This document shows, piece after piece, positions 17,635-63,041 of a stretch of DNA of 64,000 nucleotides. A program made the translations under genes and the position numbers. The first letter of the stretch is position 1. Each line of letters opens with the position of its first letter. The notes under the pieces were generated by a model. The model was not told the DNA's origin. It saw only the letters and a program-made list of their open reading frames with translations, and searched no databases. Location: IMG/VR virus record IMGVR_UViG_3300032331_003609, positions 62,001-126,000 of that record. One strand, 5' to 3'.

Positions 17635-17639
17635 TAATT

Positions 17640-17990: not shown

Positions 17991-18041
17991 AAACTAAATC
18001 TATCATCGAATATATAACTCTCAATTAGTTCTTTAAAATAT

Positions 18042-18466: not shown

Positions 18467-18472
18467 TTATAT

Positions 18473-18547
18473 CGTAGGGTAGAGCAGTGGTAGCTCGACG
18501 GGCTCATAACCCGTAGGTCGGAGGTTCGAATCCTTCCCCTGCAACCA
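18473..18547 (+). tRNA. tRNA-fMet (CAT), initiator
   Basis: C1:A72 mismatch, GGG/CCC anticodon stem, encoded CCA. Confidence 0.92.
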
Positions 18548-18558
18548 AATTAAAAATC

Positions 18559-18942
18559 ATGTCTACAAATTGCAATATTTGCAGCGATAAATGTTTCGGG
18601 AAAGAGGGATATGATGGAAGTTGCTGTACAATAGAAGGACGTGACTATATTATAGGTCCTCATAGAGACGCTAAAGAATTCATTCAATCATTATCATTAA
18701 AGCTAGGAAGATCGATCAGCTATGAGTCAATATTCATAGATTATGAAGAAGGGAAAAGACTTTTTCCTGACAAATCTGCGTGGCAAAATCCTAATTCCTA
18801 TCCAGCATTTAGAGTCGATTTAAATAATTCTAGAAAACCCTGTATTTTTTATAACACAGTGGTTAAATCGTGTATGGTGTATGATATTAGACCAGAAACC
18901 TGTGAGGTGTATCAATGTGATTATCTTAAAGGTCAGATCTAA
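18559..18942 (+). CDS. YkgJ-family cysteine-cluster protein
   Basis: CNIC..C...CC and C-terminal PCIFY...CMVYDIRPETC..YQC. Confidence 0.8.
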   Translation: MSTNCNICSDKCFGKEGYDGSCCTIEGRDYIIGPHRDAKEFIQSLSLKLGRSISYESIFIDYEEGKRLFPDKSAWQNPNSYPAFRVDLNNSRKPCIFYNTVVKSCMVYDIRPETCEVYQCDYLKGQI

Positions 18943-19122
18943 TTCATTTTTCTTTCGTTGCTAAGTTTAGAAAACAAATTACAGAGGATATTTTTAACCT
19001 TAATATTTTATCCATCTAAGGACGTTTCTGTCCGTTATAAAATAAAATCGCCTTCTTTCCTGTTTAACTTAATTTCTTGAATATATAAATGAACTCGATA
19101 GAGTCAAAATTCAAAGAAATAG

Positions 19123-21612: not shown

Positions 21613-21617
21613 GTTTC

Positions 21618-24602
21618 ATGGCAAATGTTCAATGGTTAGGAGAATGGATTAGTAGCAGCCCTTATGGGAGAGGTGATATAGTTTCGTATCAAGGTATTAC
21701 GTATATCTTATCACCGCTAGATCCAGGAATCAATGGTGTGCCTGCATTTTCACCAAATCCGTATACTGATACTGCAAGTTGGAACGTGGTAGTTACTAGT
21801 GGAACTTCAGGATCTGCTGGATCTGCTGGATCATCAGGATCTGCTGGATCATCAGGATCGTCTGGATTTTCAGGAGCACAAGGGGATTCGGGATTACAGG
21901 GTGCTCAAGGATCTAATGGAGCACAGGGAGCAACAGGTTCAGGAGCACAGGGAGCAACAGGTTCAGGAGCACAAGGAGCTGCTGGAGCACAAGGCAATAC
22001 AGGATCTAATGGAGCACAAGGAACTAAAGGAGACACAGGAGCACAGGGATCAACAGGTTCAGGAGCACAGGGAGCAACAGGAACACAAGGAACCAAAGGT
22101 GACACAGGAGCACAAGGAACTAATGGATCTGATGGAGCACAAGGAGCTAAAGGCGACACAGGAGCACAAGGCAATACAGGATTTGATGGAGCACAAGGAA
22201 CTAAAGGTGACACAGGAGCACAGGGAGCAACCGGATTACAGGGAGCACAGGGAACTAATGGAGCACAAGGAGCAACCGGATTACAGGGAGCACAAGGAAC
22301 CAACGGAGCACAAGGAGCAACCGGATTACAGGGAGCACAAGGAACCAACGGGGCACAAGGAGCAACCGGATTACAGGGAGCACAAGGAGCACAGGGTGAC
22401 ACAGGAGCACAAGGTTCGGAAGGAGCACAGGGTACTAAAGGAGATACAGGAGCACAAGGATCAGTAGGAGCACAAGGATCTAAGGGTGAAACTGGATCAC
22501 AAGGATCTGATGGACTTCAGGGAGCACAAGGATATGGTGGGGATCACGGAGCACAAGGCGAGTCTGGTTTACAGGGTGCTCAGGGATTAACAGGAGCACA
22601 GGGATTAACAGGAGCGCAGGGCACTAAAGGTAGCACCGGATCCACAGGAGCACAAGGAGCAGCAGGAACTTCCGGAACATCAGGAGCAGTAGGAGCGCAG
22701 GGAGCAGCTAACACAGGAGCACAAGGAGCATCAGGAACTTCTGGAACATCAGGGGAAACAGGAGCACAAGGAGCAACTGGATCAGGAGCACAGGGATCAA
22801 CCGGGTCTGAAGGAGCACAGGGTTCTAAAGGAGATACAGGAGCACAAGGATCAGTAGGATCAGGAGCTCAAGGAGCAACAGGATCAGGAGCTCAAGGAGC
22901 GGCAGGATCTAGTGGATCTTCAGGATCTAGTGGAACATCAGGAACTAGTGTAAGTTTCAATACAACTTCTAATACGTCTTTAACCCTTTGTGGTAGTTTA
23001 TGTAATGACTATGATATAACTGATAGTACTTCAACAAGTACCTATTATGTATATCCAACAAGACAATTAGATTATAGCAGCTTTGTAGGAACAATAACAA
23101 TAAACTGGGAAGCATTTGATAACCCAAATAGATTTACAATAAAGGATGCAGCGGGTTCAACAGTTTGGACAAGTAACTGGGTTGGTTATGCAAGTTTTGC
23201 TGGACCGTGGGGAGCAAGTATTAACACGGTAACTACTGGATATACAACATTCAGTGCTTCAAATCAGATTTACACATTACTGGTAGAAACATCAGGTGAC
23301 GGAGGAGGGACTAGCGATGCATGGCACGTGTCTTCAACCTGTACTGGCGGCGGAAGCAGTCAGAGAACGATGACTGTAGGCAGCGGTCTTTCTTATGTTC
23401 CTGGCCATACTATTATAGTTAGCTATAATTCTTCTAACTATATTATTGGAACTGTAGTTTCGTATTCAGGATCAACCTTGATATTCAATGTTAATTCATG
23501 TTACGGATCTGGAACATACACTAACTGGTCAATAACACTATCAGGATTAAGGGGATTTGATGGCACATCAGGTACATCCGGAATATCAGGGTCTTCAGGT
23601 AGCAACGGATCATCAGGATCTTCTGGTAGTAATGGATCATCAGGATCCTCTGGCAGTAGCGGATCCTCGGGAGCTTCAGGAGTACAAGGATCAACAGGAG
23701 CACAAGGTGCTAAGGGAGATACGGGAGCACAGGGAACTAAAGGTGATACTGGATCTCAGGGAGCAGCAAATACTGGAGCACAAGGAGCAGCGGGAGCGCA
23801 GGGAACTAAAGGTGATACAGGTTCACAAGGGCTACAAGGAGATCCTTCACCAGTAGGTGCACAAGGAGCAGCAGGAGCCCAGGGAGCTCAAGGGCAAACT
23901 GGAGCAGGAGCGCAAGGAGCAGCAGGAGCGCAAGGAGTTAAAGGAGACGGAGGTGGAACCGGAGCACAGGGAGCACAAGGAGTTAAAGGAGCACCCGGAG
24001 TAGGAGATATAGGAGCACAGGGAGCAGCAGGAGCACAGGGAGCAGCAGGAGCACAAGGAGCTAAAGGAGACGCCGGTGGAACTGGAGCACAAGGAGCTAA
24101 AGGAGACGCCGGGGGAACTGGAGCACAAGGAGCTAAAGGAGATGCTGGTGAACCTTCACCAGCGGGAGCGCAGGGAGCAGCTGGTGGATTCACTACCGAT
24201 TCAAATGCCCAAGTTAATTCTCTAGGCGTTGGTGTTGGACCATCAGGAACCAAAGGAAGTATTATAGCAACAAACGATATCATAGGATATTACTCATCAG
24301 ATGAGAGATTGAAAGAAAATATCAAATTAATTCAAGGATCTTTGGAAAAGATGAAACAGATAGGAGGCTACGAATTTGATTGGATTCCCAACATAGGAAT
24401 ACACTCAAACGAAGGTCATGATGTTGGGGTAATCGCTCAACAAATAGAAAAGATCCTACCAGAGGTCGTAACCACTAGAGATAATGGATACAAGGCTGTT
24501 AAATACGAAAAAATAGTAGCTCTTCTGATTGAGGGTATTAAGGATTTACATTCTATGGTTCTTGATTTACATAAAGAAATTGAAAAAATTAAGAATGCTT
24601 AA
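21618..24602 (+). CDS. Collagen-like tail fibre with S74 chaperone domain
   Basis: Gly-X-Y tracts, central globular domain, [10 protein letters not shown]...[15 protein letters not shown]...AVKYEK. Confidence 0.9.
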
Positions 24603-24605
24603 GAA

Positions 24606-25448
24606 ATGGCAAGAGCAATAAAAGCACTAATTACCAGGCAGGATTTAATAGACATGGCTAATGATGGACTGGTACTTCTTCGCCCAGGATCGGGAATAGA
24701 AAGTTCTGGAAACTATATTAACAAAGTGTTATCAAGAGAAGAGATTGCTAATTTTGCTTATATTTATGGAGGAAATTATGATTTAGGAGGAGGGGTATTT
24801 ACAAGTAGCGTTGTTTTTACCGGGCCTGAAACAACAGCGCCAACTCCTGGATTTGCTTATGATCTTGCTACTGTTTCTATATTCAAACCTGATCCATCAG
24901 TAGACGGAAAGAATCCAAATTCGGGATCAATTACGGATGTTTACACAGGTATTCCCCAAGATAAAAATAGAATGACACATTATGGTACAGATGCTAGGTT
25001 TAGCGATACTATAGTTTCACCAACAGTGGGTGTCTACAGTAAAACGGTTCATATAAATAATCAAAGAGCAGAACAGGGTCTTTTTACAGCGACCCTAACT
25101 GTAGGAAAGAGCGGAACAACACCAACAGCTACATACACTAGATCTAGTGTCGGATCAACGGACCTTTCGGGTAACATTAGACTCGGTAATTTGGTAAATT
25201 TTAGTTTGGTTCCGCCATCCGTTTGGACTACTCCGGGAACGTTAATTCTGGAGGTGTTTGAAAATAGTGTTTTACAGTATAGCAAAAGCTTAGCAATTGC
25301 AGGATATAGTACAGGGTCGCTATCAATAACTAACTATCCAATAAGATTTGGCATAAATTATGAATTTAAAGGAAAATCAACAATGGTAACAGAATTCACT
25401 GGGGCATTTAGTAATGTAACGGGTCAAAGAGCTTGTAACTTATTGTAA
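24606..25448 (+). CDS. Putative virion/tail-associated protein
   Basis: Thr/Ser/Gly-rich beta composition, co-transcribed with fibres. Confidence 0.5.
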   Translation: MARAIKALITRQDLIDMANDGLVLLRPGSGIESSGNYINKVLSREEIANFAYIYGGNYDLGGGVFTSSVVFTGPETTAPTPGFAYDLATVSIFKPDPSVDGKNPNSGSITDVYTGIPQDKNRMTHYGTDARFSDTIVSPTVGVYSKTVHINNQRAEQGLFTATLTVGKSGTTPTATYTRSSVGSTDLSGNIRLGNLVNFSLVPPSVWTTPGTLILEVFENSVLQYSKSLAIAGYSTGSLSITNYPIRFGINYEFKGKSTMVTEFTGAFSNVTGQRACNLL

Positions 25449-25459
25449 AACAATTTAAA

Positions 25460-27067
25460 ATGGCAGCAACTACAACAACAATAACATTTGATTTTACAAA
25501 AACCAACCCGTTAAAAAGATGGCAGTTTAATCCAAATGGTGCAACATCTTATTTGTTTAGTGATACCACAATTAGCGGGCCAACGGCTCAAACAGTTGCT
25601 GATGGAAGTCTTTTTAAAATATCCAGATCCGACGATCAATATAACGGATTAACAGAGGGAACCGGAGCATCTATTTCTCTTGATGCGTCCATGAATGAGC
25701 TATTGGGTATATCAAGTACTAATACCTTTGTTAAACGTCTAATAATAGTTCCGCATTTTAAAGTGTTTAATAACTGGTCAGGCATGAACACATCAGCTTT
25801 ACAGACTATAGGAGAAGCGGGTAGATGGATTAATACAAACCAGCCCCTGTCAGTAATGTTTAAATCTAAGATCCGATTTATAAACAGATCTGATGGCTAT
25901 TATATGCAAGCCTGGCCTGCTAATGCTGGTGGATTTAATATTAGTAATACTGGTTGGGCTAATTTTGATACTGATATTAATCTTCTTTCTGTTGGATATG
26001 ACACAGTTGAATCCTATGCAGCAAATACTGAGGCATTAGATTATGTTGGAAATTCTGCTTCAAATGCTATCTTCATAGATGATTTTAACAACTATAGATA
26101 TACCTCAGATACTAGAATATTTAATACCGGAAAAATTAGTAACAGTGTAACTTCCAGTAGTGTTGCAACTCAGTATAAGGTTTTAAATTTTTCCCCAAAT
26201 AATTTTGATACTGCAACTCTTGAAGCAAGTAGCGATTTTGGTGAATATTGGGCATATCCTCTATTGACAACAGATAAAGTTAGATTTGAAATACCATTTG
26301 CTATAACAATTCCTCAATTCCAACACGTTTGGACAGATTGGCCATGGAATAAATCGAGAAAAACCCTAACCACCGATTTAGTATTTACAAAGATTGAATT
26401 CAAAGTGATGTATGATACGATATCAGAATATAAAGCTAAATTTTATGCACCAGTAGATCCAATATTTTCAGCTAATGTCGCTCCAGGTCAGGTGTGGCTA
26501 GATCCAGAAAAAACAATTCTTGTTCCTGCTGGATATTTGGCAAGAAGTGGAAAATACGCTCTTGTAAATGAATTCGGTGTAGCTAATGGATTAAGAAATT
26601 GCCAAGCTAAAATTATTCTTACCGCCTCTGATAACGGAACAGTATCATCATCATATCCAACAGCAGTAAGTGGTTATGGGGATTACAATTTTAATCCTGA
26701 TGTTTCTTATATCACATTAGATGCAGCTCCTAATTATCCGATAGTTTTTGACAGCTGGGAAGCTACAGATTTTGATGGTAATGTTACAACATTAAGCTAT
26801 GATTCAACAATTAATGTTTATAATGGACTTTACGCAAGTATAAAACCAATATTCACAGAGAGCACTCCTGGTCCAAGCCCAAGCCCAACTCCTGGACCAA
26901 CTCCTGGTGGATCCTGTAATCAATATATGACAACGTACGCAGGAACATACACATATACGAATTGTTATGGTAGTTCACAAACATCATATGTCGGAAGTGG
27001 TCAAGAAATATGCGCACAAGCTGCACCAGGTGTTCCTGCAGGTGGAGGATTCTGTCCGCAACCTTAA
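25460..27067 (+). CDS. Putative virion protein with Pro/Thr linker and small Cys-rich C-terminal domain
   Basis: TPGPSPSPTPGPTPGG linker then C..YTYTNC..C..C. Confidence 0.5.
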   Translation: MAATTTTITFDFTKTNPLKRWQFNPNGATSYLFSDTTISGPTAQTVADGSLFKISRSDDQYNGLTEGTGASISLDASMNELLGISSTNTFVKRLIIVPHFKVFNNWSGMNTSALQTIGEAGRWINTNQPLSVMFKSKIRFINRSDGYYMQAWPANAGGFNISNTGWANFDTDINLLSVGYDTVESYAANTEALDYVGNSASNAIFIDDFNNYRYTSDTRIFNTGKISNSVTSSSVATQYKVLNFSPNNFDTATLEASSDFGEYWAYPLLTTDKVRFEIPFAITIPQFQHVWTDWPWNKSRKTLTTDLVFTKIEFKVMYDTISEYKAKFYAPVDPIFSANVAPGQVWLDPEKTILVPAGYLARSGKYALVNEFGVANGLRNCQAKIILTASDNGTVSSSYPTAVSGYGDYNFNPDVSYITLDAAPNYPIVFDSWEATDFDGNVTTLSYDSTINVYNGLYASIKPIFTESTPGPSPSPTPGPTPGGSCNQYMTTYAGTYTYTNCYGSSQTSYVGSGQEICAQAAPGVPAGGGFCPQP

Positions 27068-27085
27068 TGATATATAAAATCAATT

Positions 27086-27307
27086 ATGAAAACATACTTT
27101 AATAAAGATTCATCTTTTTTCTGTCTAGACGACATAGAGCAATCGTACACACAGATAAATGTATTTGGTGATGAAAATGTTATAGTTAAAGGAACTAAAA
27201 CCCAAATCTTTGAGTATTTAATGAGCATAGCATCAGATTCTACAGAATCATCGGCAGGAGAATTTCTTCAGAAAAAATTAGATGCTTTAAATAATATTGG
27301 TCTTTAA
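27086..27307 (+). CDS. Hypothetical protein
   Basis: ORF preceded by GATATATA motif at 27069. Confidence 0.6.
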   Translation: MKTYFNKDSSFFCLDDIEQSYTQINVFGDENVIVKGTKTQIFEYLMSIASDSTESSAGEFLQKKLDALNNIGL

Positions 27308-27332
27308 TTCTCTCTTTATCGTAACTTTTTCT

Positions 27333-27370
27333 TATATTTGGATATAATTTAAATAGGGAAACGATATATA
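27333..27370 (+). promoter_or_regulatory. Promoter region of tRNA operon 1: TATATTTG (Bacteroidota -7 type) and GATATATA motif
   Basis: TATATTTG 27333-27340, GATATATA 27363-27370. Confidence 0.55.
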
Positions 27371-27377
27371 AATTAAA

Positions 27378-27470
27378 ATGAACAAAAGCTTCTACATATT
27401 GCCGCTTCACACTACGTCATCATCTTCATCAAGAAGACCGATAACTCATGTGGAGATACTGGGTAATTAG
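27378..27470 (+). CDS. Leader peptide 1 MNKSFYILPLHTTSSSSSRRPITHVEILGN (putative attenuator)
   Basis: 30-codon ORF between promoter motif and terminator; below ORF-track cutoff. Confidence 0.75.
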   Translation: MNKSFYILPLHTTSSSSSRRPITHVEILGN

Positions 27471-27495
27471 AAGAAACTTAAACTCATTTTCGTCT

Positions 27496-27533
27496 AAAAA
27501 GCCTAGATCCCTAATAAGATTTAGGCTTTTTTT
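27496..27533 (+). terminator. Intrinsic terminator/attenuator upstream of tRNA operon 1
   Basis: GCCTAGATC-loop-GATTTAGGC 9-bp stem plus T7. Confidence 0.85.
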
Positions 27534-27568
27534 ATTGGGTTCTTTGACATGGTGGGAAATTAAAAATT

Positions 27569-27656
27569 GGAGAGATGGCAGAGTTGGTCGATTGCGTCAG
27601 TCTTGAAAACTGAAGAACGGGAAACTGTTCCGTGGGTTCGAATCCTACTCTCTCCG
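27569..27656 (+). tRNA. tRNA-Ser (TGA)
   Basis: GGAGAGA/TCTCTCC, long variable arm, TTCGAAT, G73. Confidence 0.95.
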
Positions 27657-27699
27657 CAGGCGCAATTTCGTACCTTATACAGATATAGGGTATGAATAA

Positions 27700-27771
27700 G
27701 CATCTTAAGCATTGCAGGCGATGCGCCAGATTTGTAATCTGGATAACTCGGTTCGATTCCGGGCGGATGCT
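27700..27771 (+). tRNA. tRNA-Thr (TGT), atypical D-loop
   Basis: CCAGA-TTTGTAA-TCTGG anticodon arm, TTCGATT T-loop, GCATCT/GGATGC acceptor. Confidence 0.75.
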
Positions 27772-27864
27772 CAATACTAACGTAAAATAAGTACACTAAC
27801 ATAATATCTGTTAGAATACAAAAGTTCGGTAGCAAGGTTATTAACGCGTTTTATAAAGATATAG

Positions 27865-27985
27865 GCCGGTGTGGCGGAATGAATAATCTTGAATTCGAAT
27901 AGAGATTATTAGACGTCCCGTAATTCTAGAAAAGGTGGTGTATCCGAAATGGACATCGTGAAGGTAGTCAACCCTTCCACCGGCA
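27865..27985 (+). pseudogene. tRNA-Leu-like element with 30-nt D-loop hairpin insertion and no clear anticodon arm
   Basis: GCCGGTG/CACCGGC-A acceptor, TGGCGGAAT..AGACG, variable arm, GAAGG/CCTTC T-stem. Confidence 0.55.
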
Positions 27986-28094
27986 CCTTATTTAAGATAT
28001 TCTAAGAACAGCGTCGAGCCGGATTTTGCGTCGGTCTTAGATTAGATTTGTCCAATGGGAGAGCCGGCCGCGACCCCGGACAAATCACTATATT

Positions 28095-28168
28095 GGTTCT
28101 GTAGCTCAGTTGGATAGAGCGCCACCCTTCTAAGGTGGATGTCATTGGTTCGAATCCAATCGGGATCA
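28095..28168 (+). tRNA. tRNA-Arg (TCT)
   Basis: Canonical cloverleaf, CCACC-CTTCTAA-GGTGG. Confidence 0.93.
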
Positions 28169-28173
28169 CAATT

Positions 28174-28308
28174 AAGGTTGATTGGGGAATGGTTATGTCT
28201 ATAGCTCGAGCGTGGATACTGGCTGGCATAATCGGAGTTTGGAGGTATTCACCTAAGTAATGCCAATCGTAAAAGAGATCGTCCACTGAACCATCTTTCT
28301 CTTTCCTT
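28174..28308 (+). ncRNA. Candidate structured ncRNA inside the tRNA operon
   Basis: Nested helices AAGG/CCTT, ATGGTT/AACCAT, GTGGA/TCCAC, TGGCAT/ATGCCA, AGGT/ACCT. Confidence 0.5.
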
Positions 28309-28315
28309 AAAATAT

Positions 28316-28390
28316 GTTGGATGTAGCCTAATGGTAGGGCAAATGCTTGTGGCGCATTACGCGTGGGTTCGATCCCCATCATTCAACCCA
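28316..28390 (+). tRNA. tRNA-His (GTG)
   Basis: G-1:C73 8-bp acceptor, AATGC-TTGTGGC-GCATT, CCA. Confidence 0.93.
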
Positions 28391-28394
28391 ATAT

Positions 28395-28470
28395 CTAGAT
28401 GTAGAGGAGCCAAGTTTATCTCGCTGCTTTTGGAAAGCAGAGCACGCTGGGGCGGAGCCAGCCATTTAGA
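28395..28470 (+). tRNA. tRNA-Pro (TGG) with non-canonical D- and T-loops
   Basis: C1:G72, A73; CTGCT-TTTGGAA-AGCAG; T-arm GCTGG-GGCGGAG-CCAGC. Confidence 0.7.
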
Positions 28471-28538
28471 CAAAAAGATCAAAGAGACCGCTAAATCGAG
28501 TTAGTGAAAATCTACATTCTCTTTGGTCTTTTATATTA

Positions 28539-28612
28539 GGACTTGTAACTCAGTTGGTTAGAGTGCAACACTCATAATGTTGAAGCCCCTGGTTCGAGCC
28601 CAGGCTGGTCCA
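28539..28612 (+). tRNA. tRNA CAT, probably Ile2 (lysidine-modified, reads ATA); elongator Met not excluded
   Basis: Canonical cloverleaf CAACA-CTCATAA-TGTTG; G1:C72. Confidence 0.85.
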
Positions 28613-28698
28613 CGAAATAGTGTCTTGGTACGCTCTGAAGAAATTCAACGACAAGGTCTCGGTAAGCGAAACGCGTTCGATCTTGCCCAAAATATAAA

Positions 28699-28780
28699 GG
28701 CCCCCTGTTGTAATTGGTAGCCAATTCAGATTTAGGATCTGATGTCGCAAGACGTGTCGGTTCGAGTCCGACGGGGGTCA
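28699..28780 (+). tRNA. tRNA-Leu (TAG)
   Basis: TCAGA-TTTAGGA-TCTGA, variable arm TGTC-GCAA-GACG, TTCGAGT. Confidence 0.92.
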
Positions 28781-28852
28781 CAACAAGATTAGGTACAAAA
28801 AGATATTAAGAAACTAAACCTAAAAACGATATATAATATTCAACTAAACAAA

Positions 28853-28936
28853 ATGAGAAACCAGAATCAATATAATTATTACCCAATGCCTGAACAAGGT
28901 AATGAGGGAAATTATATGGACACAGATCTGGGATAA
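28853..28936 (+). CDS. Leader peptide 2 MRNQNQYNYYPMPEQGNEGNYMDTDLG (putative attenuator)
   Basis: 27-codon ORF after GATATATA (28828-28835) and before terminator. Confidence 0.75.
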   Translation: MRNQNQYNYYPMPEQGNEGNYMDTDLG

Positions 28937-28956
28937 CATTTTTTAAATATATTTTG

Positions 28957-28989
28957 AAAACCCAGATCTCAATAAGGTCTGGGTTTTTT
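28957..28989 (+). terminator. Intrinsic terminator/attenuator upstream of tRNA operon 2
   Basis: CCCAGATC-TCAATAA-GGTCTGGG stem plus T6. Confidence 0.85.
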
Positions 28990-28993
28990 ATTT

Positions 28994-29066
28994 GGGGATG
29001 TAGCTCCAGCGGTAGAGCGCGTGACTGTTAATCACTAGGTCGTAAGTTCGAATCTTACCATCCCCT
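28994..29066 (+). tRNA. tRNA-Asn (GTT)
   Basis: GGGGATG/CATCCCC, CTGTTAA loop, TTCGAAT. Confidence 0.93.
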
Positions 29067-29071
29067 CAGAT

Positions 29072-29145
29072 TGCAAGATAGTTCATTTGGTGAGAACACT
29101 GGATTCATAACCCAGAGGTGATGAGTTCGAATCTCATTCTTGCGA
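29072..29145 (+). tRNA. tRNA-Met (CAT), probably elongator
   Basis: TGCAAGA/TCTTGCG, TTCATAA loop, TTCGAAT. Confidence 0.85.
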
Positions 29146-29150
29146 CAAAT

Positions 29151-29222
29151 GCTCCCGTCGACTAGCGGTTAGGTCACCTCCCTTTCACGGAGGTAGCACG
29201 GATTCGAATTCCGTCGGGAGTA
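29151..29222 (+). tRNA. tRNA-Glu (TTC)
   Basis: CCTCC-CTTTCAC-GGAGG. Confidence 0.92.
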
Positions 29223-29227
29223 CAAAT

Positions 29228-29308
29228 TGGGATATCGCATAGTGGCAATTGCGGCTGACTGTAAATCAGCTCTCTTTGAGTTCGGCGGTTCGAGTCCGTC
29301 TATCCCAA
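29228..29308 (+). tRNA. tRNA-Tyr (GTA)
   Basis: GCTGA-CTGTAAA-TCAGC, long variable arm, TTCGAGT. Confidence 0.93.
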
Positions 29309-29314
29309 CAATAC

Positions 29315-29439
29315 GAGTTAACTGTCCAGTGAGGGAACTGGGGCCTGCCGGTAAATCAGGCGTCGCAAGATCAAGGTTAGTAAGTGATTCTGATACCTGC
29401 AGTACAACAGATCACGTGGTTCGAATCCCCCTTAACTCA
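29315..29439 (+). ncRNA. Enlarged tRNA-like element, anticodon ambiguous
   Basis: GAGTTAA/TTAACTC acceptor, GGTTCGAATCC T-loop, extra hairpins. Confidence 0.5.
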
Positions 29440-29502
29440 CTAAATCAGAAGCGGTAAAAAAGCGTGATATATAGGATAAATTAATCACGAATATAGCAAT
29501 CA

Positions 29503-29673
29503 ATGAAAATTGCTGACATTAAAACACATTTAAAAGGGAAAGGCCAGTATAAAGCCGAAATGATTCTAAGCGAAAAATTTGAGGGAGAAAATGTTTTTAC
29601 GAATGACAATGTCTCTATTCAACCCCAAAAATGGTTGTTATACACTATCACTTTAAAGGAGGATATTAAATAA
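29503..29673 (+). CDS. Hypothetical protein (56 aa, MKIADIKTHLKG...)
   Basis: Hand-found ORF after GATATATA at 29466. Confidence 0.55.
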   Translation: MKIADIKTHLKGKGQYKAEMILSEKFEGENVFTNDNVSIQPQKWLLYTITLKEDIK

Positions 29674-29712
29674 CTAATCAACTGAATTAATCTATATTCA
29701 TTTTATGCTCAT

Positions 29713-30879
29713 ATGAAAATTGATTTTTGGTATAGCAATATTATTCCAAAATCCGGAATTCAGGATCTACTTGAAGAAATAGACGAGGATGTTTTATTTA
29801 AGAATATTGATACTGATACAGTAAATACTAATAAATTAAATTTTTTAGTCTTTACGTGGGAAACAAAATGGGCATTTTCCAACACCTACTATACACATTC
29901 CGACGAGTTTATAAGATTACTATCAAGACTTCAGGATAAAGATTTTTATTTTATAGCAGATTTTTCTGGAGAAGCTCACACACGTCCTGACGAAAATAGT
30001 TTATTGTTCCTAAATAAATTAAGGGATAATAAGATCAATATAAATCGGATAATTGTTGCAAACAATGATTCTTCCAAAATAGGAATTAATAAAATAAGAT
30101 ATGAATCATTTATACTTAACACGTGCTTTTTTCCTAATTTCTTTTTGTCAACATGTAATCATCTGGATAATATCCTAGGTAACCAGCAAATAAAAAATTC
30201 TATAATACCTGATAAAAAATTCTTATGTCTCAATCGTAGAATGTTCCATCATAAGTACAAAGTTATAGAGGAATTATTCCATAGAGGATTATTAGAAGAT
30301 ACTAGATTTAGCTGGGTAGATAATAAGGATAAAAAAAATCTATTCAATAAAAATCTGAACTCATATTTAGGGATAGACATAAATAATTTTAAATCAATTC
30401 AATTAGAAGGTGATGTAATGTATGGTAGCGATTTATCAAGACATGAAGAATATCTTTATACTGTAAATCCTGATTGGTATTATAAGAGTAAAGTTAATAT
30501 TATCACTGAAACAATATTGGAGGGAAAAGAAATTCACATAACAGAAAAAACGTGGAAGGCAATTTATTTAGGAATTCCTTTTGTGATTTATGCATCAAAG
30601 AATCATCTTAAGATCCTAAGAGAAATGGGGTTTAAGACATTTAACACATTGATCAACGAAGATTATGATGAAATGATTGGAGATGCTAAACTAAAACAGA
30701 TTATAGATAGTGCTGAAGAATTAGCTAGAATTTATAATACCCCAGAAGTTTTAGAGATATGCAGATTTAATCAGAAAATTTATTCAGATAAAATACATCG
30801 TAAGAATATTTGTAAAAATTCTTTTTTGAATAGGATAGTTGATATTAAAAATAATACTATTAAATTAAAGATCTTTTAA
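29713..30879 (+). CDS. Single-domain paralogue of the 1770..4265 repeat (GT10-like ET..TEK motif)
   Basis: KFLCLNRR, SKVNIITET..IHITEKTWKAI..GIPFVI. Confidence 0.55.
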   Translation: MKIDFWYSNIIPKSGIQDLLEEIDEDVLFKNIDTDTVNTNKLNFLVFTWETKWAFSNTYYTHSDEFIRLLSRLQDKDFYFIADFSGEAHTRPDENSLLFLNKLRDNKININRIIVANNDSSKIGINKIRYESFILNTCFFPNFFLSTCNHLDNILGNQQIKNSIIPDKKFLCLNRRMFHHKYKVIEELFHRGLLEDTRFSWVDNKDKKNLFNKNLNSYLGIDINNFKSIQLEGDVMYGSDLSRHEEYLYTVNPDWYYKSKVNIITETILEGKEIHITEKTWKAIYLGIPFVIYASKNHLKILREMGFKTFNTLINEDYDEMIGDAKLKQIIDSAEELARIYNTPEVLEICRFNQKIYSDKIHRKNICKNSFLNRIVDIKNNTIKLKIF

Positions 30880-31489
30880 CTATAGGTTTGGTGTATCTAG
30901 TTTTGAAAATTTCAGCCAATTCGCTGTGTCCAACCTCACCATAATGTCCATCATCAACTTCACCTTCAGATTCTTCTGAAACTGTTAGGCATCTTATAAA
31001 TTCACATTTTGTTATAGCTCCTCCAAAAGGTGTCCAATGAATTATGTCATTATTAGGAAGAGCCTTGTTTATTAATCTTATCCAAGAATCCACTTCGTGT
31101 GCAAATTTATACGAAGATCTATTTAACATTATTTCGTCTATTGATTGCTTAGATAAATGATTGAAAAGAGAAAGATCATAATCATCACCAGGTCTTAGAC
31201 TAACCCATGTATCGTTTTTTGTCGTTAGTCTAAATCTAACTGGATTTGACCATCCGATTATAACAAAGTCATTTTCTTTTATTTCCCAGATATTTTTACA
31301 GATGTTTTCGAAAATAGCATAATTATCAGAGCCTCCTTCCCCTATATTCTTTTTAATGAAACTAAGATCCCTAGATAGAATATCAGAAAAGTTAAGAGGT
31401 TTATAACCCTTCCATTCTATGTATTTTTTTGCCCAGTGTCCAAATCCCTCTGTGTATGAGTCACCAAATGTCCAAAGTGTGTTCGCCAT
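30860..31489 (-). CDS. SGNH/GDSL hydrolase-like protein
   Basis: LWTFGDSYT, GSDN, DGHY; start moved to MANTLW. Confidence 0.7.
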   Translation of the reverse strand: MANTLWTFGDSYTEGFGHWAKKYIEWKGYKPLNFSDILSRDLSFIKKNIGEGGSDNYAIFENICKNIWEIKENDFVIIGWSNPVRFRLTTKNDTWVSLRPGDDYDLSLFNHLSKQSIDEIMLNRSSYKFAHEVDSWIRLINKALPNNDIIHWTPFGGAITKCEFIRCLTVSEESEGEVDDGHYGEVGHSELAEIFKTRYTKPIVKRSLI

Positions 31490-31558
31490 GTTGATAATAT
31501 ATACTATAGAAGTTAAAACTAAAATATTCCAACTATCATATATAAAATAAAACCCCGC

Positions 31559-32335
31559 ATGTTTAAATATCTTACAAGGGAGGAAGTTCAACAGCTTTCT
31601 TTCGATTGGAAATATAAAGGATACTCCGTAATAGATCTAATCACATCAGAAGAGGCTGATTTAATATCAGAAGATCTTGATAATCTAAGAAAAAGAAGAA
31701 ATTCAGTAGATGATAAGTACGGGGAGTATGATCCTTATATCCATCCTCACAAAGAATCAGAGATGGTTGAAAAAATTCTTGTACACCCTAAGATAGTGGA
31801 AGCCATGGAATTTATAATAAATTCTGAGATTCAAGGAATACAAACGTGGGCTTATTTTAAACCTCCGGGTGAACTTGGTAGAGACGCACACCAAGATGCT
31901 TTCTATGCTCAAACCCAATGGAATAAGACTGCTAATGTTAGTATATCTCTGGACGATACTGATGAGTCAAATGGAGGTATTTGGTTTTATGAGGCTTCTC
32001 ATTTACTTCCAATTCTACCTATAGGGATAGACGAGGAAAGAGCTAAGCTTAATCCTATTAGATGGAGAAACGAGAGAGGTAAGGCATGTGTTATGCCTGA
32101 AGGACATAATTTTACTAGAATAACCCCATCGATCAGAAAGGGACAAGCAGTTTTCCTGCATTCACATATAGTTCATGGATCTAATGAGAATAAAAGCGAT
32201 CGTTTCAGAAGATCTATTCTGAGCGGATATACAGGCAAAGGATCTCCATTCAGAAGCGGAGAACATATGAAAAGGGAACCAATTGACATTTATGAACTAA
32301 AATTAAAATACTGGGAGGTAAAAAAACTCCAATAG
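31559..32335 (+). CDS. Phytanoyl-CoA dioxygenase (PhyH)-like 2OG-Fe(II) oxygenase
   Basis: AHQD, LDD.DESNGG, HSHIVHGS..N.S..FRR. Confidence 0.85.
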   Translation: MFKYLTREEVQQLSFDWKYKGYSVIDLITSEEADLISEDLDNLRKRRNSVDDKYGEYDPYIHPHKESEMVEKILVHPKIVEAMEFIINSEIQGIQTWAYFKPPGELGRDAHQDAFYAQTQWNKTANVSISLDDTDESNGGIWFYEASHLLPILPIGIDEERAKLNPIRWRNERGKACVMPEGHNFTRITPSIRKGQAVFLHSHIVHGSNENKSDRFRRSILSGYTGKGSPFRSGEHMKREPIDIYELKLKYWEVKKLQ

Positions 32336-32342
32336 ATTTTGA

Positions 32343-33554
32343 ATGAAGCTAATACACACATTTGTTCCGAATAAGTTTGATCTAAAAAACGAGAAGGATA
32401 AAAACATAATCTGGAAGGATTTAATGTATGTCCAGATGCTTAGTGTTTTGCTTGCTAATAGGGAATATGGAGGTATTTCATTGTACACCAACAACACAAT
32501 AAAAAAACAAATATTAGATATAGGTGTTCCCTATTCTGACATAGACACTGACATATTACAAGACACCACATCAGATCTATTTTGTATACCTAAACTCAGG
32601 ATTTATAGAGAAATAAAAGAACCTTTTGTACATATTGATACAGATACTCTTATCTATAATAAGATAGATTTTTCAAAATTTGATTCGTCCGTAGTTTATT
32701 CACATTCGGATATTAGACCTCCGTTACATAAAAATGGCGACGATAAACTCTATGAGATCTTTAATAATTATCCATCCCTAGGAGATTCAGATTCGTTCTT
32801 TAAATCTGCTAAAATAACATACCTAGATCTGTTTAATAGATTGAATAATGATCATTCAGAATTTAAATTAAACAACATAAGGGTAGGTGATATACCTAAT
32901 ATGAATATTATAATTGTTAATGACCATGACAATTTTAATAAGGCATCTCAAATGTCCCTGGATCATTATATAAGAAATAAGGAAGTTATAGACAGCACTA
33001 AAAATGGGGAATGTTACATAGAGCAGCTAATGATACACCTGAATATGATGGAGATTAGCGAAAAGTATAGGGAAGAAGTTATAGCAAAAAAGACCTTCAT
33101 TCTTAAAGATTCACCATTTATGCTAGATGCTGATTTTGGGTCTCATTTAGATGATTTAAAATTTCCATTCACCATGATACACAATTCTCATAAAGATGTA
33201 GAAATAGATGAAACAATTCATATTAATGGAGTATTATATTCAAGGGCTCAAGAATATCACGAGCATTACGGTAGAACGACTAAGGTAAATTCGATGGAAG
33301 ACATTATAAAATTATTTGATTTTGATTTTTATGGTCTTTCCCACCTAACATTCTATAAATGGTCTGAATTTTTTCAAGCAATTGTAATAGGATATATTGT
33401 AAAAAACTTCGGAGAAGAATATGTTAGAAGTGTTTACGAATATTATAAAACAATTTATCCTGTAGTTTATAGTTTTCCTAGATTATCAAAAGGAGAAACA
33501 TTATACCAGGATCTAACAGGATTTAAATTTGAAAAGATAAAAAGCTTGGTCTGA
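32343..33554 (+). CDS. Hypothetical protein, glycosyltransferase-like (DxD)
   Basis: PKL.IY...EPFVHIDTD. Confidence 0.5.
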   Translation: MKLIHTFVPNKFDLKNEKDKNIIWKDLMYVQMLSVLLANREYGGISLYTNNTIKKQILDIGVPYSDIDTDILQDTTSDLFCIPKLRIYREIKEPFVHIDTDTLIYNKIDFSKFDSSVVYSHSDIRPPLHKNGDDKLYEIFNNYPSLGDSDSFFKSAKITYLDLFNRLNNDHSEFKLNNIRVGDIPNMNIIIVNDHDNFNKASQMSLDHYIRNKEVIDSTKNGECYIEQLMIHLNMMEISEKYREEVIAKKTFILKDSPFMLDADFGSHLDDLKFPFTMIHNSHKDVEIDETIHINGVLYSRAQEYHEHYGRTTKVNSMEDIIKLFDFDFYGLSHLTFYKWSEFFQAIVIGYIVKNFGEEYVRSVYEYYKTIYPVVYSFPRLSKGETLYQDLTGFKFEKIKSLV

Positions 33555-33562
33555 ACAAAAAA

Positions 33563-33635
33563 GCGGGAGTAGCTCATTTGGTAGAGCGATAGCCTTCCAA
33601 GCTATAGGTGGCCAGTTCGAGCCTGGTCTCCCGCT
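33563..33635 (+). tRNA. tRNA-Gly (TCC)
   Basis: GCGGGAG/CTCCCGC, U73, ATAGC-CTTCCAA-GCTAT. Confidence 0.95.
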
Positions 33636-33698
33636 CCGCCCTAAACCAGAATATGTCTAATAAACTATTCTGGTTTATTATTATAAAATAGGTTTAGC

Positions 33699-34244
33699 GT
33701 GGATATAGATCAATACTTACAAACAGAAAATTGGTTTGATTATCATTCTTTTTATGATTTTGTATCAGAAAAGAATTATAAAAAACTTGTAGAGGTTGGG
33801 GTCTGGAAAGGGCATTCAGTATCCTATCTGGCTGCTAAGAATATGAATAGTAAAATATATGCGGTGGATCTTTTTGAGTTATCGAGGGAATTGTTTCATG
33901 GGGAAATACAAAAACAGATCCCTTACATATATGACATCTACAATAAGAATCTTGAATTAACTGGAACAAGAAAGACAATTAGGGATATAAAGGGTCTATC
34001 GTGGGATGTTGCAAATCACTTTCAGGATCAGACGGTTGATTTTGTTTTTCTTGATGCTTCTCATAATTATGAGAGTGTTACAAAAGATATTAATGCATGG
34101 TTTCCTAAAGTTAGATCAGGAGGTATAATAGCAGGACATGACTATAGTTGGGATGGTGTTAATTTTGCAGTAAAAGAATTTGCAGGAGAAGAATTGGAAA
34201 TACTGACTTACGAAGGAAGTGTTTGGTATATAAATAAAATATAA
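33699..34244 (+). CDS. Class I SAM methyltransferase (Methyltransf_24-like)
   Basis: VEVGVWKG, DFVFLDASHNY, GGIIAGHDY. Confidence 0.88.
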   Translation: MDIDQYLQTENWFDYHSFYDFVSEKNYKKLVEVGVWKGHSVSYLAAKNMNSKIYAVDLFELSRELFHGEIQKQIPYIYDIYNKNLELTGTRKTIRDIKGLSWDVANHFQDQTVDFVFLDASHNYESVTKDINAWFPKVRSGGIIAGHDYSWDGVNFAVKEFAGEELEILTYEGSVWYINKI

Positions 34245-34249
34245 AAGAT

Positions 34250-34480
34250 ATGATTTGGATTATTTACATTTTAAGCGTGGGGTATTGCTTATACAAGTTA
34301 GCAAAAAGACATCAAAAAAATGATCTAGGTGGAGGTATTGGTACATCTCCTGGATTGGATACTATTATGGTAGTCGTATTGGCTCCTTTGTTGACCGTAG
34401 TGGACGTATCGTTAACATGGATCAGAATATATAAGGAAGCTGAAGAAGCAAGGCGTAGGAGAACTAATACAATGCTTTAA
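34250..34480 (+). CDS. Small membrane protein, hypothetical
   Basis: Two hydrophobic segments. Confidence 0.6.
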   Translation: MIWIIYILSVGYCLYKLAKRHQKNDLGGGIGTSPGLDTIMVVVLAPLLTVVDVSLTWIRIYKEAEEARRRRTNTML

Positions 34481-34493
34481 TAATTAAATACAC

Positions 34494-34654
34494 TGGCCGG
34501 TGATGAAAAGCGTACGCACGGCAGACATACCCTCCTGTCTCGGGGGCGCGGATAACAAGACAGATAAATGGTAATGGGTTGACCACACGCTTGCAAGCAT
34601 AAGTGCCATTTATTGAATTGCCGCATGGAGGTTCGAATCCTTCCTGGCCAGCCA
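34494..34654 (+). tRNA. tRNA-Asp (GTC) with very large variable-region insertion
   Basis: TGGCCGG/CTGGCCA, G73, CCA; CCCTC-CTGTCTC-GGGGG; GGAGG-TTCGAAT-CCTTC. Confidence 0.75.
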
Positions 34655-35726: not shown

Positions 35727-35761
35727 AAAAAAAAACCCAGATCTTTTAGGTCTGGGTTTTA
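35727..35761. terminator. Bidirectional intrinsic terminator between convergent genes
   Basis: A-run, CCCAGATC-TTTTA-GGTCTGGG, T-run. Confidence 0.8.
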
Positions 35762-62988: not shown

Positions 62989-63009
62989 GAATTACTTAAA
63001 ATGATATAT

Positions 63010-63039
63010 AAAAGGCTTATCCTACCGATAAGCCTTTTT
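63010..63039. terminator. Intrinsic terminator
   Basis: AAAA-GGCTTATC/GATAAGCC-TTTTT. Confidence 0.8.
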
Positions 63040-63041
63040 AT

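Follow-up and report, generated by a model that had tools for sequence, protein, structure and literature searches.

A putative leader-peptide attenuator in front of a tRNA operon of a T4-like jumbo phage

Introduction

Classical attenuators are found in front of enzyme operons such as trp, his, leu and pheA. In these systems, a short open reading frame (ORF) lies between the promoter and the regulated genes, and it carries a run of codons for one amino acid located 5' of an antiterminator segment. The 5' arm of the terminator has two possible partners, its own 3' arm and the end of the leader ORF, and in the absence of leader translation a further pairing between regions 1 and 2 (1:2) ensures that transcription terminates. 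The principle has been described previously (PMC1183508, PMC3082878). Multivalent attenuators are also known, wherein the leader carries codons for two or three metabolically linked amino acids and a shortage of any one of them relieves termination. Examples are the leaders of thr (Thr and Ile) and of ilvGMEDA and ilvBN (Ile, Leu and Val). A leader of this type has been reported for ilvBNC (PMC11857589).

Similarly, attenuation can act on components of the decoding machinery. The genes pheST, with their leader pheM, encode a synthetase for a single amino acid and are controlled by the level of the cognate charged tRNA. A leader with His codons precedes hisS paralogues in bacilli (PMC2965389). 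T-box riboswitches also switch between terminator and antiterminator structures in response to the state of a specific tRNA, wherein the uncharged tRNA is bound directly, by a specifier codon together with the T-box sequence, and no translation is involved. The tRNA genes of phage T4 form a cluster with two subclusters and the stable RNAs called species 1 and 2. To our knowledge, T4 tRNA clusters are not preceded by a leader ORF and terminator, and no published precedent for leader-peptide attenuation of tRNA genes was found in the literature searched.

Herein we describe a candidate for such control in a 64,000-nucleotide stretch of DNA (the window). It belongs to the genome of an uncultured T4-like jumbo phage of 245 kb, and the T4-type assignment rests on TerL. 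On balance, we favour the view that a phage tRNA operon is gated by nucleotides 28825-28989 acting as a transcription attenuator of the ribosome-mediated (leader-peptide) type, with promoter activity, translation, termination, readthrough and the response to tRNAs all being inferred.

Architecture of the two leader modules

The element, called module 2, consists of a promoter-like motif, a small ORF and an intrinsic terminator, followed by tRNA-Asn (Table 1). This first tRNA begins 4 nt past the T-run, and therefore there is no space for a separate promoter. An earlier note made from the sequence alone had described these features, and all of them held, each at its proposed position. Its count of leader codons was also correct, with five Asn, four Tyr, two Glu and two internal Met codons (13 of 26), one codon each for Arg, Thr and Leu, and two for Pro. 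The tRNA-Gly that it had placed at 33563 was likewise confirmed.

Table 1. Predicted features of the two leader modules and their tRNA operons (window coordinates).
Feature	Coordinates	Strand	Details	Basis or remark
Module 1	27361..27533	+	GATATATA 27363-27370; leader ORF 1 27378-27470 (30 codons); terminator 27496-27533	Paralogue of module 2
tRNA operon 1	27569..28781	+	Ser(TGA), Thr(TGT), Arg(TCT), His(GTG), Pro(TGG), CAT tRNA, Leu(TAG)	ARAGORN, Rfam
Promoter-like motif	28825..28837	+	AACGATATATAAT; core GATATATA 28828-28835	Core invariant across leader-2 and leader-1 homologues; promoter function inferred
Leader ORF 2	28853..28936	+	27 codons plus TAA; ATG start; peptide MRNQNQYNYYPMPEQGNEGNYMDTDLG	Translation inferred
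Region 1	28859..28865	+	AACCAGA (codons 3-5)	Partner of region 2 in the minimum-energy fold
Region 2	28924..28932	+	AGATCTGGG; final leader codons; 5' arm of antiterminator	Complement of 28961-28969
Intrinsic terminator (regions 3 and 4)	28957..28989	+	A-tract; stem CCCAGATC (28961-28968)/GGTCTGGG (28976-28983); loop; T6 (28984-28989)	Folding energy
tRNA operon 2	28994..29309	+	Asn(GTT) 28994-29067; Met(CAT) 29072-29146; Glu(TTC) 29151-29223; Tyr(GTA) 29228-29309	ARAGORN and Rfam tRNA matches
Conserved tRNA-like RNA of unknown kind	29315..29439	+	Last element of operon 2 in the window	Near-identical in L080 and L003

GATATATA occurs 13 times in the window, and 12 of these copies sit 5-39 nt 5' of an ATG. 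At the copy located at 63003, a hairpin comes next and is followed by a TTG-started ORF at 63042. A Shine-Dalgarno-like motif is present in just 1 of 45 genes of this phage, and its genes generally lack Shine-Dalgarno sites, so the absence of such a site from leader ORF 2 is normal for the phage. Module 1 shares the promoter motif and the layout of module 2, and the ORFs of the two modules have diverged to different codon sets.

The tRNA-like RNA at the end of operon 2 is not called a tRNA by ARAGORN at default settings and has no Rfam match. Relatives have tRNA-Gln (and tRNA-Asp) after this RNA. Conserved non-tRNA RNAs are also interspersed among the tRNAs of operon 1, and a relaxed ARAGORN search of the conserved RNAs between tRNAs yielded only unconvincing, intron-containing calls. 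An Rfam cmscan of 17500-34500 at E <= 1 gave only tRNA, tmRNA and chance-level matches, with no leader family, T-box or other cis-regulatory family. A third type of leader was sought 5' of tRNA-Gly, the tmRNA, tRNA-Arg(ACG) and the Asp-Gly-Gly group of the relatives, and none was found; protein genes directly precede these RNAs.

Each leader is enriched in codons read by the tRNAs of its own operon

The earlier note had proposed that each leader tracks its own operon to a degree that makes coincidence unlikely, and this claim held when the probability of the composition was computed. The 13 matching codons in leader 2 compare with a background fraction of 0.192 for codons read by the tRNAs of operon 2 (binomial P = 4e-4), and leader 1 has 19 of 29 codons read by the tRNAs of operon 1 versus a background of 0.253 (P = 6e-6). 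Background frequencies were drawn from 17,689 codons in the long ORFs of the window. Among the window's 240 ORFs that start with ATG and have 20-45 codons, leader 2 has the highest fraction of codons for its operon, with the runner-up at 0.39, and leader 1 similarly ranks first of the 240 small ORFs for the codon set of operon 1. Cross-matches between each leader and the other operon are at background. In every variant, and for both leaders, 11-20 codons match the leader's own operon versus 3-5 for the other operon.

The match in leader 2 is also specific to the reading frame, with 13 matches in the ORF frame versus 5 and 3 in the other two, and the matched codons end at the start of region 2. 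Both the wobble rules and the choice of ATG or ATA for the CAT tRNAs were picked post hoc, and the enrichment survives all rule variants tried. Leader 1 has three ATA codons and no internal ATG, leader 2 shows the opposite pattern, and on this basis the CAT tRNA is predicted to be Ile2 (AUA) in operon 1 and Met in operon 2.

Leader 2 also carries Gln codons, which the earlier note had reported as having no matching tRNA in the operon. This discrepancy is resolved by close relatives that have an identical or near-identical leader, wherein tRNA-Gln (along with tRNA-Asp) is found further down the operon. One or both of these tRNAs are present in the operon of L003, L052, L070 and L080. The homology of the window to its relatives ends just past the tRNA-like RNA, and the window has lost the Gln/Asp end of operon 2, which explains why its leader has Gln codons without a local tRNA. 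When the leader of the window is scored with the larger tRNA set that includes Gln and Asp, 18 of 26 codons match versus an expected fraction of 0.293 (P = 3e-5).

Competing RNA structures

The earlier note had identified a 9-bp complement between region 2, AGATCTGGG, and the segment CCCAGATCT (28961-28969), which is indeed perfect. A complement of this length never arose in 5000 dinucleotide shuffles of the 104 nt upstream. The resulting antiterminator pairing stops 1 nt short of the TAA codon. A simple terminator scan listed neither leader hairpin, and folding energies were used instead. The terminator hairpin, with an 8-bp G+C-rich stem, has a folding energy of -17.2 kcal/mol (core -12.7), and the antiterminator hairpin with its inner stem has -15.5 kcal/mol. 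Terminator and antiterminator are alternative structures of similar energy.

The 1:2, 2:3 and 3:4 pairings are retained in all variants of module 2, and all three occur in the six variants that were folded. The terminator stem is invariant, and the antiterminator pairing of region 2 is 92.6% paired across variants. The pairing between regions 1 and 2 is present in the minimum-energy fold of all six folded variants; it is 81% paired, has only three invariant core pairs and shows no covariation. The helices of leader 2 are nearly invariant, and therefore covariation is uninformative for or against them. In leader 1, the antiterminator is 98% paired, and one pair varies among A-U, G.U and G-C in a compensatory manner. 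The corresponding shuffle control for leader 1 was not significant (133/500).

The hairpin of module 2 recurs near 35736-35760, where it acts as an ordinary terminator between convergent genes. PeSL-like cassettes of T4-type phages consist of a stem-loop followed immediately by a promoter, and they are repeated and flank variable ORFs. A mobile cassette of this kind was considered for module 2 and was rejected because the order of the module is promoter, ORF, stem-loop and tRNA, and because the hairpin copy at ~35736 has no adjacent copy of the promoter motif or ORF.

Conservation and co-variation among related phages

Further relatives were gathered through the 535-aa gene upstream, and leader 2 was compared among nine sequence variants from related phages. 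No GenBank phage matched the tRNA region or either leader module (megablast and blastn), and tRNA clusters are absent from the unrelated loci L005-L045, so the breadth of this arrangement rests on related phages only. GTDB genomes were scanned with both leader-peptide alignments and gave zero relatives, and thus there is no clue to the host from these genomes.

Module 2 always adjoins the first tRNA of its operon (Asn or Cys) in the nine variants, with a gap of 4-10 nt, and in L002 the leader and operon 2 are missing together. The reading frame of leader ORF 2 is under selection. There are 27 codons in seven variants and 28 in two, pN/pS is 0.25-0.55 for most pairs, columns with synonymous changes only occur, and there is no frame-breaking indel. 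Between the window and L003, high DNA conservation extends over the whole segment and is not limited to the coding part.

The codons of leader 2 co-vary with tRNA content only in part. A Cys codon is present in all five variants whose operon has tRNA-Cys (L055, L061, L070, L078 and L079), each of which begins with that tRNA, and in none of the four distinct leaders without it. The leaders of L070 and L003 differ in just two codons, 9 and 24, and at codon 9 the change is TAT to TGT. Similarly, all three variants with tRNA-Lys have a Lys codon within codons 3-22, each at a different position, and the five without this tRNA have none there; L052 and L070 do have a Lys codon at the variable position 24 despite having no tRNA-Lys. 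Permutation of the operon sets among seven variants gave p = 0.044. The numbers of Met, Asp and Gln codons do not track the presence or absence of their tRNAs among the variants, and there are still two internal ATG codons where the operon lacks tRNA-Met. In addition, the Phe and Thr codons of L050, L055 and L061 have no cognate tRNA in operon 2. The variants share a phylogeny, so these counts exaggerate the independence of the associations. For leader 1, tandem TTA TTA codons are confined to variants that have tRNA-Leu(TAA), with L074 as an exception wherein this tRNA is present and leader 1 has no TTA codons.

Neither leader peptide matches a PHROG family at E <= 1. The conserved peptide core of leader 2, QMPEQGN..YM..DLG, could also reflect a function of the peptide itself.

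A proposed mechanism

The earlier note's interpretation of this locus as an attenuator is supported by all in silico tests, several of which are independent of the observation on which that note was based, and function remains inferred. Transcription would begin at the GATATATA-type promoter, and translation of the 27-codon leader would, like that of the other genes of the phage, proceed without a Shine-Dalgarno site. An unhindered ribosome would reach the TAA codon and cover region 2 (28924-32), the terminator (28957-89) would form, and the transcript would stop 4 nt before tRNA-Asn. Perhaps, when tRNAs for Asn, Tyr, Glu, Gln, Met or other codons are scarce, the ribosome stalls earlier and occupies region 1 or its vicinity, which would leave region 2 free. 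Free region 2 would then pair with the 5' arm of the terminator, and RNA polymerase would continue into the tRNA genes. In the absence of a ribosome, regions 1 and 2 would pair with each other and the terminator would form. Operon 1 would be governed by the paralogous leader, which is written in the codon set of that operon. The sensing codons are read by tRNAs encoded downstream, and the circuit would therefore constitute negative feedback on the supply of those tRNAs.

The sensing codons are scattered over many tRNA species and include few tandem runs, so the response to any single tRNA should be weak.

A bolder interpretation is that the virus runs its own tRNA genes through self-referential attenuators, which are on only when those exact codons are decoded slowly, and whose leaders are recoded along with each gain or loss of tRNA genes. 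We see no firm reason either to accept or to dismiss this broader proposal. Under it, slow decoding might conceivably arise from a mismatch in codon usage with the host, or from host anticodon nucleases that cut those tRNAs.

If this bolder interpretation is true, tRNA genes would for the first time be shown to be under ribosome-mediated attenuation, and the leaders would directly report the tRNAs that limit phage translation. The attenuator interpretation touches on the open questions of how phage tRNAs are regulated and why phages carry particular tRNA sets. If it is correct, the supply of tRNA would be a regulated quantity in the phage, with feedback for each operon, and the leaders would disclose from sequence alone which codons the phage 'worries' about. 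Leader-peptide attenuation would be extended to viruses, to genes whose products are RNAs and to hosts that work without Shine-Dalgarno sites. Such a leader would also be a small, transferable device for sensing how well chosen codons can be decoded, and thus a potential part for synthetic biology.

Alternative explanations

One alternative, which we consider unlikely, is that leader ORF 2 is simply the gene of a small phage protein and has a promoter and a terminator of its own. In that case, the tRNAs would be made by constitutive leak-through of a weak terminator or from long upstream transcripts, and the codon match would be a by-product of co-adaptation with the (late) genes of the phage. 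In favour of this view, the peptide core is conserved with synonymous changes, the hairpin of module 2 also terminates ordinary genes, and the Met, Asp and Gln codons fail to co-vary with tRNA content. Moreover, GATATATA is followed by a hairpin and T-run without a leader ORF at 63003-63043, so promoter-then-hairpin arrangements do exist in this genome. However, general co-adaptation does not explain why the repertoire is split between the two leaders (11-20 versus 3-5 matches, with each leader ranked first of 240), nor why Cys and Lys codons are gained alongside those tRNAs. It also leaves unexplained the 9-bp complement lying exactly over the final codons and the constant abutment of the module on the first tRNA, and the lack of a PHROG family for either peptide counts against it as well.

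It is also unlikely that the element senses translation generally, such as a global slowdown or ribosome loading in the manner of ermC-like leaders, with the specific codons mattering little. The many codon types, each present only 1-5 times and with few tandem runs, are in keeping with this possibility, and a 1:2 / 2:3 / 3:4 layout reacts to ribosome position regardless of what causes the stall. The strong frame- and operon-specific codon enrichment and the co-variation of Cys and Lys codons would nevertheless be left unexplained. Least plausible, and in our judgement very unlikely, is an untranslated 5' leader in which the ORF is fortuitous and the hairpin is the terminator of operon 1 or an element for processing or stability of the tRNA precursor. 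The window has no terminator between tRNA-Leu (28781) and the hairpin of module 2, which could therefore end operon 1 transcripts, and whatever precedes tRNA-Asn must be removed by RNase P. The high conservation of the whole segment between the window and L003, which extends to non-coding DNA, also fits this explanation. Yet the retained ORF length, the absence of frameshifts, pN/pS < 1, the synonymous-only columns and the restriction of the enrichment to one frame all speak against it. A role for the hairpin merely as the terminator of operon 1 is rejected because five relatives (L052, L050, L055, L061 and L078) have the module kilobases from operon 1, yet abutting operon 2.

Relationship to known systems

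The leader-peptide attenuator that we favour has a trp-like layout. As in the classical attenuators, its ORF is situated between the promoter motif and the genes presumed to be regulated, its matched codons precede the antiterminator segment, the 5' arm of its terminator has the same two alternative partners, and its predicted 1:2 pairing, the least well supported of the helices, could enforce termination in the absence of leader translation. Unlike those systems, the phage module would regulate tRNAs rather than enzymes, and the molecules sensed would be the operon's own products. Its sensing codons span 4-9 tRNA species rather than forming a run for one amino acid. The phage element is also viral, has no Shine-Dalgarno site, has a very short 5' UTR and matches no Rfam leader family.

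Codons for several amino acids within one leader are a property shared with the multivalent attenuators. In the phage, however, the set is defined not by metabolic linkage but by the tRNA genes downstream, and it shifts with their gain and loss. The synthetase-gene attenuators are similar in that a component of decoding is placed under the control of charged-tRNA levels, but they are cellular, and the product of the viral operon is the tRNAs themselves. With T-box riboswitches, the element has in common a leader switch between terminator and antiterminator that would respond to tRNA state. In contrast to a T-box, which is lacking among the Rfam matches, it has a conserved ORF that we take to be translated.

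The arrangement of the genes is reminiscent of T4, with two tRNA subclusters, interspersed conserved non-tRNA RNAs and a T4-like repertoire (Ser-UGA, Thr-UGU, Arg-UCU, Pro-UGG, Leu, a CAU tRNA, Gln and Gly-UCC). By inference from these comparisons, we lean towards the view that the locus represents a known mechanism, ribosome-mediated attenuation, directed at a new target, a tRNA operon.

Architecture and conservation of the leader-2 module

The leader-2 module consists of a promoter-like motif, a short ORF (leader 2) and an intrinsic terminator, followed by the tRNA genes of operon 2. An earlier note had interpreted this arrangement as an attenuator, and all of the elements that it listed are found where it had placed them. 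Its interpretation is supported to the limit of sequence analysis.

Positions of features in the window and in loci from related phages (L numbers)
Feature	Position	Details
GATATATA, example sites	window 1757, 27069, 29466, 43875 (-), 53585, 58430	
GGTTCTTTGACAT	window 27537-27549	past leader-1 terminator; all variants
GGTTCTTTGACAT and shorter form GGTTTGACA	L003 ~5497-5510 and 5846-5856	GGTTCTTTGACAT before tRNA-Glu, GGTTTGACA before tRNA-Gln
Leader 1	window 27378-27470	
Operon 1	window 27569-28781	tRNA-Ser, Thr, Arg, His, Pro, CAT, Leu
Leader 2	window 28853-28936	
Region 2 of leader 2	window 28924-28932	antiterminator 5' arm
Terminator 5' arm, leader 2	window 28961-28969	
Operon 2	window 28994-29309	tRNA-Asn, Met, Glu, Tyr
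CAT tRNA, operon 1	window 28539-28613	C4-G69
CAT tRNA, operon 2	window 29072-29146	U1.G72, mismatched 31-39 pair
CCCAGATC/GGTCTGGG hairpin elsewhere	window ~35736-35760; L002 ~9933; L003 ~9459(-); L050 ~5156(-)	
Conserved structured RNAs	window 27865-27985, 28005-28088, 29315-29439	
Protein genes within tRNA clusters	L078 8838-9533; L055 ~1800-2480; L050; L061	
tmRNA	window 18042-18547	tag ARQEIGASIINMAFANAPVALAA; third CAT-anticodon tRNA 6 nt downstream
High-G+C block	window ~18000-24600	44-49% vs ~33%; large ORFs 19123-21612 and 21618-24602; many nested ORFs, both strands

Searches of GenBank phages and GTDB genomes gave no similar sequence. Uncultured relatives were gathered via the upstream 535-aa gene plus one neighbouring gene, and also by using a tRNA-Leu 20-mer (metagenomes) and peptide patterns (IMG/VR). 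There are nine sequence variants of leader 2, with 27 codons in seven and 28 in two, and no change breaks the frame. The ORF always has the promoter motif upstream and the CCCAGATC/GGTCTGGG terminator downstream, with 4-10 nt separating the T-run from the first tRNA, be it Asn or Cys.

Leader 2 peptides
Locus	Peptide
window = L080	MRNQNQYNYYPMPEQGNEGNYMDTDLG
L003	..YYQ...GDYMVN..
L070	..NCYQ...VK..
L052	MKAQNQ...
L050	MKTQFTYNFNQ...
L055	...NCNQMPKQ...
L061-65	...NCNQMPEQGNKG...
L078 (= L072/73)	MRNQSPYNNCYQMSEQDNKMDYMRTDLV
L079	MVNQSTYNNCYQMSEQGNEM...

Pairwise pN/pS values are 0.25-0.55 for almost all leader-2 pairs and 0.0-0.75 for pairs of leader 1, the paralogous ORF preceding operon 1. 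Some columns exhibit only synonymous changes (e.g. AAT/AAC, CAA/CAG and GAT/GAC), wherein each pair corresponds to one tRNA. Thus, the leader sequence evolves as codons, and this coding constraint, like the anatomy and conservation of the module, is shown by the data. That the ORF is translated remains an inference.

Leader codons match the downstream tRNAs

By standard wobble rules, which were used throughout, 13 of the 26 codons of leader 2 match operon 2 tRNAs (background 0.192, P = 4e-4), and only 5 of 26 match those of operon 1 (background 0.253; not enriched). Leader 1 shows the reciprocal specificity, with 19/29 matches to operon 1 (background 0.253, P = 6e-6) and 4/29 to operon 2 (background 0.192; not enriched). 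Other treatments of the CAT tRNAs shift these counts and leave the overall picture the same. Over its six frames, the window contains 240 ORFs of 20-45 codons that start with ATG; among them, each leader ranks first for its own tRNA set, and the enrichment is limited to the ORF frame.

The earlier note had left the Gln and Gly codons of leader 2 unmatched. The Gln codons are explained by operon 2 of the relatives, which extends to tRNA-Gln and tRNA-Asp in L003 and also carries both in L052 and L070, and a tRNA-Gly is found together with tRNA-Gln in L050. L080, whose leader is identical to that of the window, has a tRNA-Gln. In the alignment, window homology to relatives breaks just past the third conserved structured RNA, which is tRNA-like, and a promoter motif with a small, unrelated ORF takes the place of the Gln end of operon 2. 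When Gln and Asp are added to the set, window leader 2 has 18/26 matches (0.293 expected, P = 3e-5), and the L003 leader has 19/26 against the larger set.

Leader 1 lacks internal ATG codons and has ATA three times, whereas leader 2 has two internal ATG codons and no ATA. The operon 1 CAT tRNA is therefore predicted to be of the AUA-reading Ile2 type, and that of operon 2 to be tRNA-Met.

A Cys codon (Cys is 0.9% of background residues) appears in the leader of all five variants whose operon starts with tRNA-Cys; the four distinct leaders from operons without this tRNA have none. The L070 leader is of the L003 type save for codons 9 and 24, and its codon 9 is changed from TAT to TGT. Similarly, core Lys codons (codons 3-22) occur in 3/3 variants with tRNA-Lys, at positions 14, 18 and 19, and in 0/5 without. 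When operon sets are permuted among seven variants, 4.4% of permutations match or exceed the own-match sum. Codons 14-15 of leader 1 are TTA TTA only in variants with tRNA-Leu(TAA); they are TCA TCA in the window and L002, where tRNA-Ser(GGA) and tRNA-Leu(TAA) are cleanly deleted.

There are also counter-examples. L074 carries TCA TCA despite having tRNA-Leu(TAA), L048 and L053 have AGC codons with no tRNA-Ser(GCT) detected, there are two internal ATG codons regardless of tRNA-Met, and the Phe and Thr codons of three leader-2 variants are unmatched in operon 2. Asp and Gln codon counts do not track tRNA content among the leader-2 variants. Moreover, the variants share kinship, and these counts are not independent events. 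The co-variation is real, but partial.

Alternative RNA structures

The leader-2 terminator hairpin has a folding energy of -17.2 kcal/mol, A/U extension included. The competing antiterminator, in which region 2 pairs with the terminator 5' arm and an inner A/U stem forms, has a value of -15.5 kcal/mol. The perfect 9-nt complement claimed by the earlier note holds, and when the 104 nt upstream were dinucleotide-shuffled 5000 times, none of the shuffles produced one. When the whole leader is folded to minimum energy, CCAGA in codons 3-5 is paired with the region-2 UCUGG and the terminator is formed, whereas the ensemble centroid carries the antiterminator in its place. These predicted pairings suggest a four-segment layout, as in trp-type attenuators.

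All three pairings are retained in each of six folded variants (antiterminator -10.5 to -19.5, terminator -15.9 to -18.3 kcal/mol). Over the alignment, 96% of terminator and 93% of antiterminator positions are paired, vs at most 64% in slid controls. Both elements are near-invariant, and covariation speaks neither for nor against them. The leader-1 antiterminator is 98% paired in seven variants, and one pair varies as A-U, G.U and G-C because L055 swapped its terminator for the CCCAGATC type; its shuffle control is not significant (133/500). Matched codons stop at the start of region 2 in both leaders. The attenuator model needs this, since stalling any further along would place the ribosome over region 2. 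The alternative pairings are shown; termination itself is inferred.

Putative promoter, host and genomic setting

There are 13 copies of GATATATA in the window, of which 12 are on the coding strand and precede an ATG by 5-39 nt, often by merely 5-9 nt. The motif is unchanged across all homologues of both leaders. The T4 late promoter is TATAAATA, and by analogy we read GATATATA as a putative phage promoter yielding very short 5' UTRs. A Shine-Dalgarno-like motif precedes just 1 of 45 genes, and so the host likely starts translation without such sites, as in Bacteroidota. A CHU_C-domain gene in the relative L076 points in the same direction. The spacing of GATATATA and the rarity of these motifs suggest a late-type phage promoter producing leaderless or near-leaderless mRNAs in such a host; that the promoter is used is inferred.

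At the copy at 63003 (segment 63003-63043), a hairpin (GGCTTATC/GATAAGCC) with T5AT3 begins 3 nt past the motif without an intervening leader ORF, and a TTG-started ORF follows at 63042; a putative promoter here directly adjoins a terminator. Separately, GGTTCTTTGACAT, which includes TTGACA, is repeated just upstream of several tRNAs and could serve as a host-type -35 element or as a processing signal.

The contig (IMGVR_UViG_3300032331_003609) is 244,850 bp, and the window (its bases 62001-126000; G+C ~33%) codes for a T4-type large terminase, DnaB, an SbcC-like nuclease, 13 tRNAs and one tmRNA. The nearest terminases are from huge uncultured phages and T4-like phages of Sphingomonas, Tenacibaculum and Flavobacterium. 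The window also includes a block of elevated G+C content.

The tRNA genes are interspersed with three conserved structured RNAs that escape tRNA calling. The ends of two of them are like those of a tRNA (GCCGGTG...CACCGGC and GAGTTAA...GGTTCGAATCC...TTAACTC) and lie some 120 nt apart. These RNAs are kept in relatives even beside deleted tRNAs, and they resemble the stable RNAs of the T4 tRNA cluster.

The tRNA clusters of relatives are interrupted by protein genes, which marks them as insertion hot spots. One such gene, with DUF559/MTES_1575 homing-endonuclease-like domains, sits between tRNA-Cys and tRNA-Asn, and another between the leader-1 terminator and tRNA-Ser.

Alternative explanations

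One possibility is that the module merely forms the end of operon 1. This is ruled out by five relatives wherein the two are kilobases apart, and the module therefore belongs to operon 2. L002 lacks both module and operon 2. The distant relative L076 retains its tRNAs without leader 1, which indicates that the leaders are accessory and not required. Elsewhere the CCCAGATC/GGTCTGGG hairpin with flanking A/T runs separates convergent genes, where it serves as an ordinary terminator that apparently works in both directions, and thus the proposed attenuator reuses the standard terminator of this phage group.

Another possibility is that the peptide itself is functional, and the coding constraint is compatible with this and with selection on tRNA identity alike. 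For the attenuator reading, codon specificity is shown, and the response to tRNAs is inferred from sequence alone. On balance, we lean modestly towards leader 2 specifically sensing tRNA supply.

Comparison with known systems

An Rfam search places the leader-2 element in no curated leader family, nor in the T-box family. Leader-peptide attenuation of tRNA genes or phage tRNA clusters is unreported in the full-text literature searched, which excluded subscription-only papers, and to our knowledge no case has been described. If the tRNA-sensing function is correct, the element would be a known attenuation mechanism in a new form, applied to a tRNA operon. Its inferred manner of working is that of trp/his-type attenuators, and it is likewise similar to the multivalent thr/ilv leaders. 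The closest in logic is leader-peptide control of synthetase genes, namely pheST and paralogues of hisS (PMC2965389).
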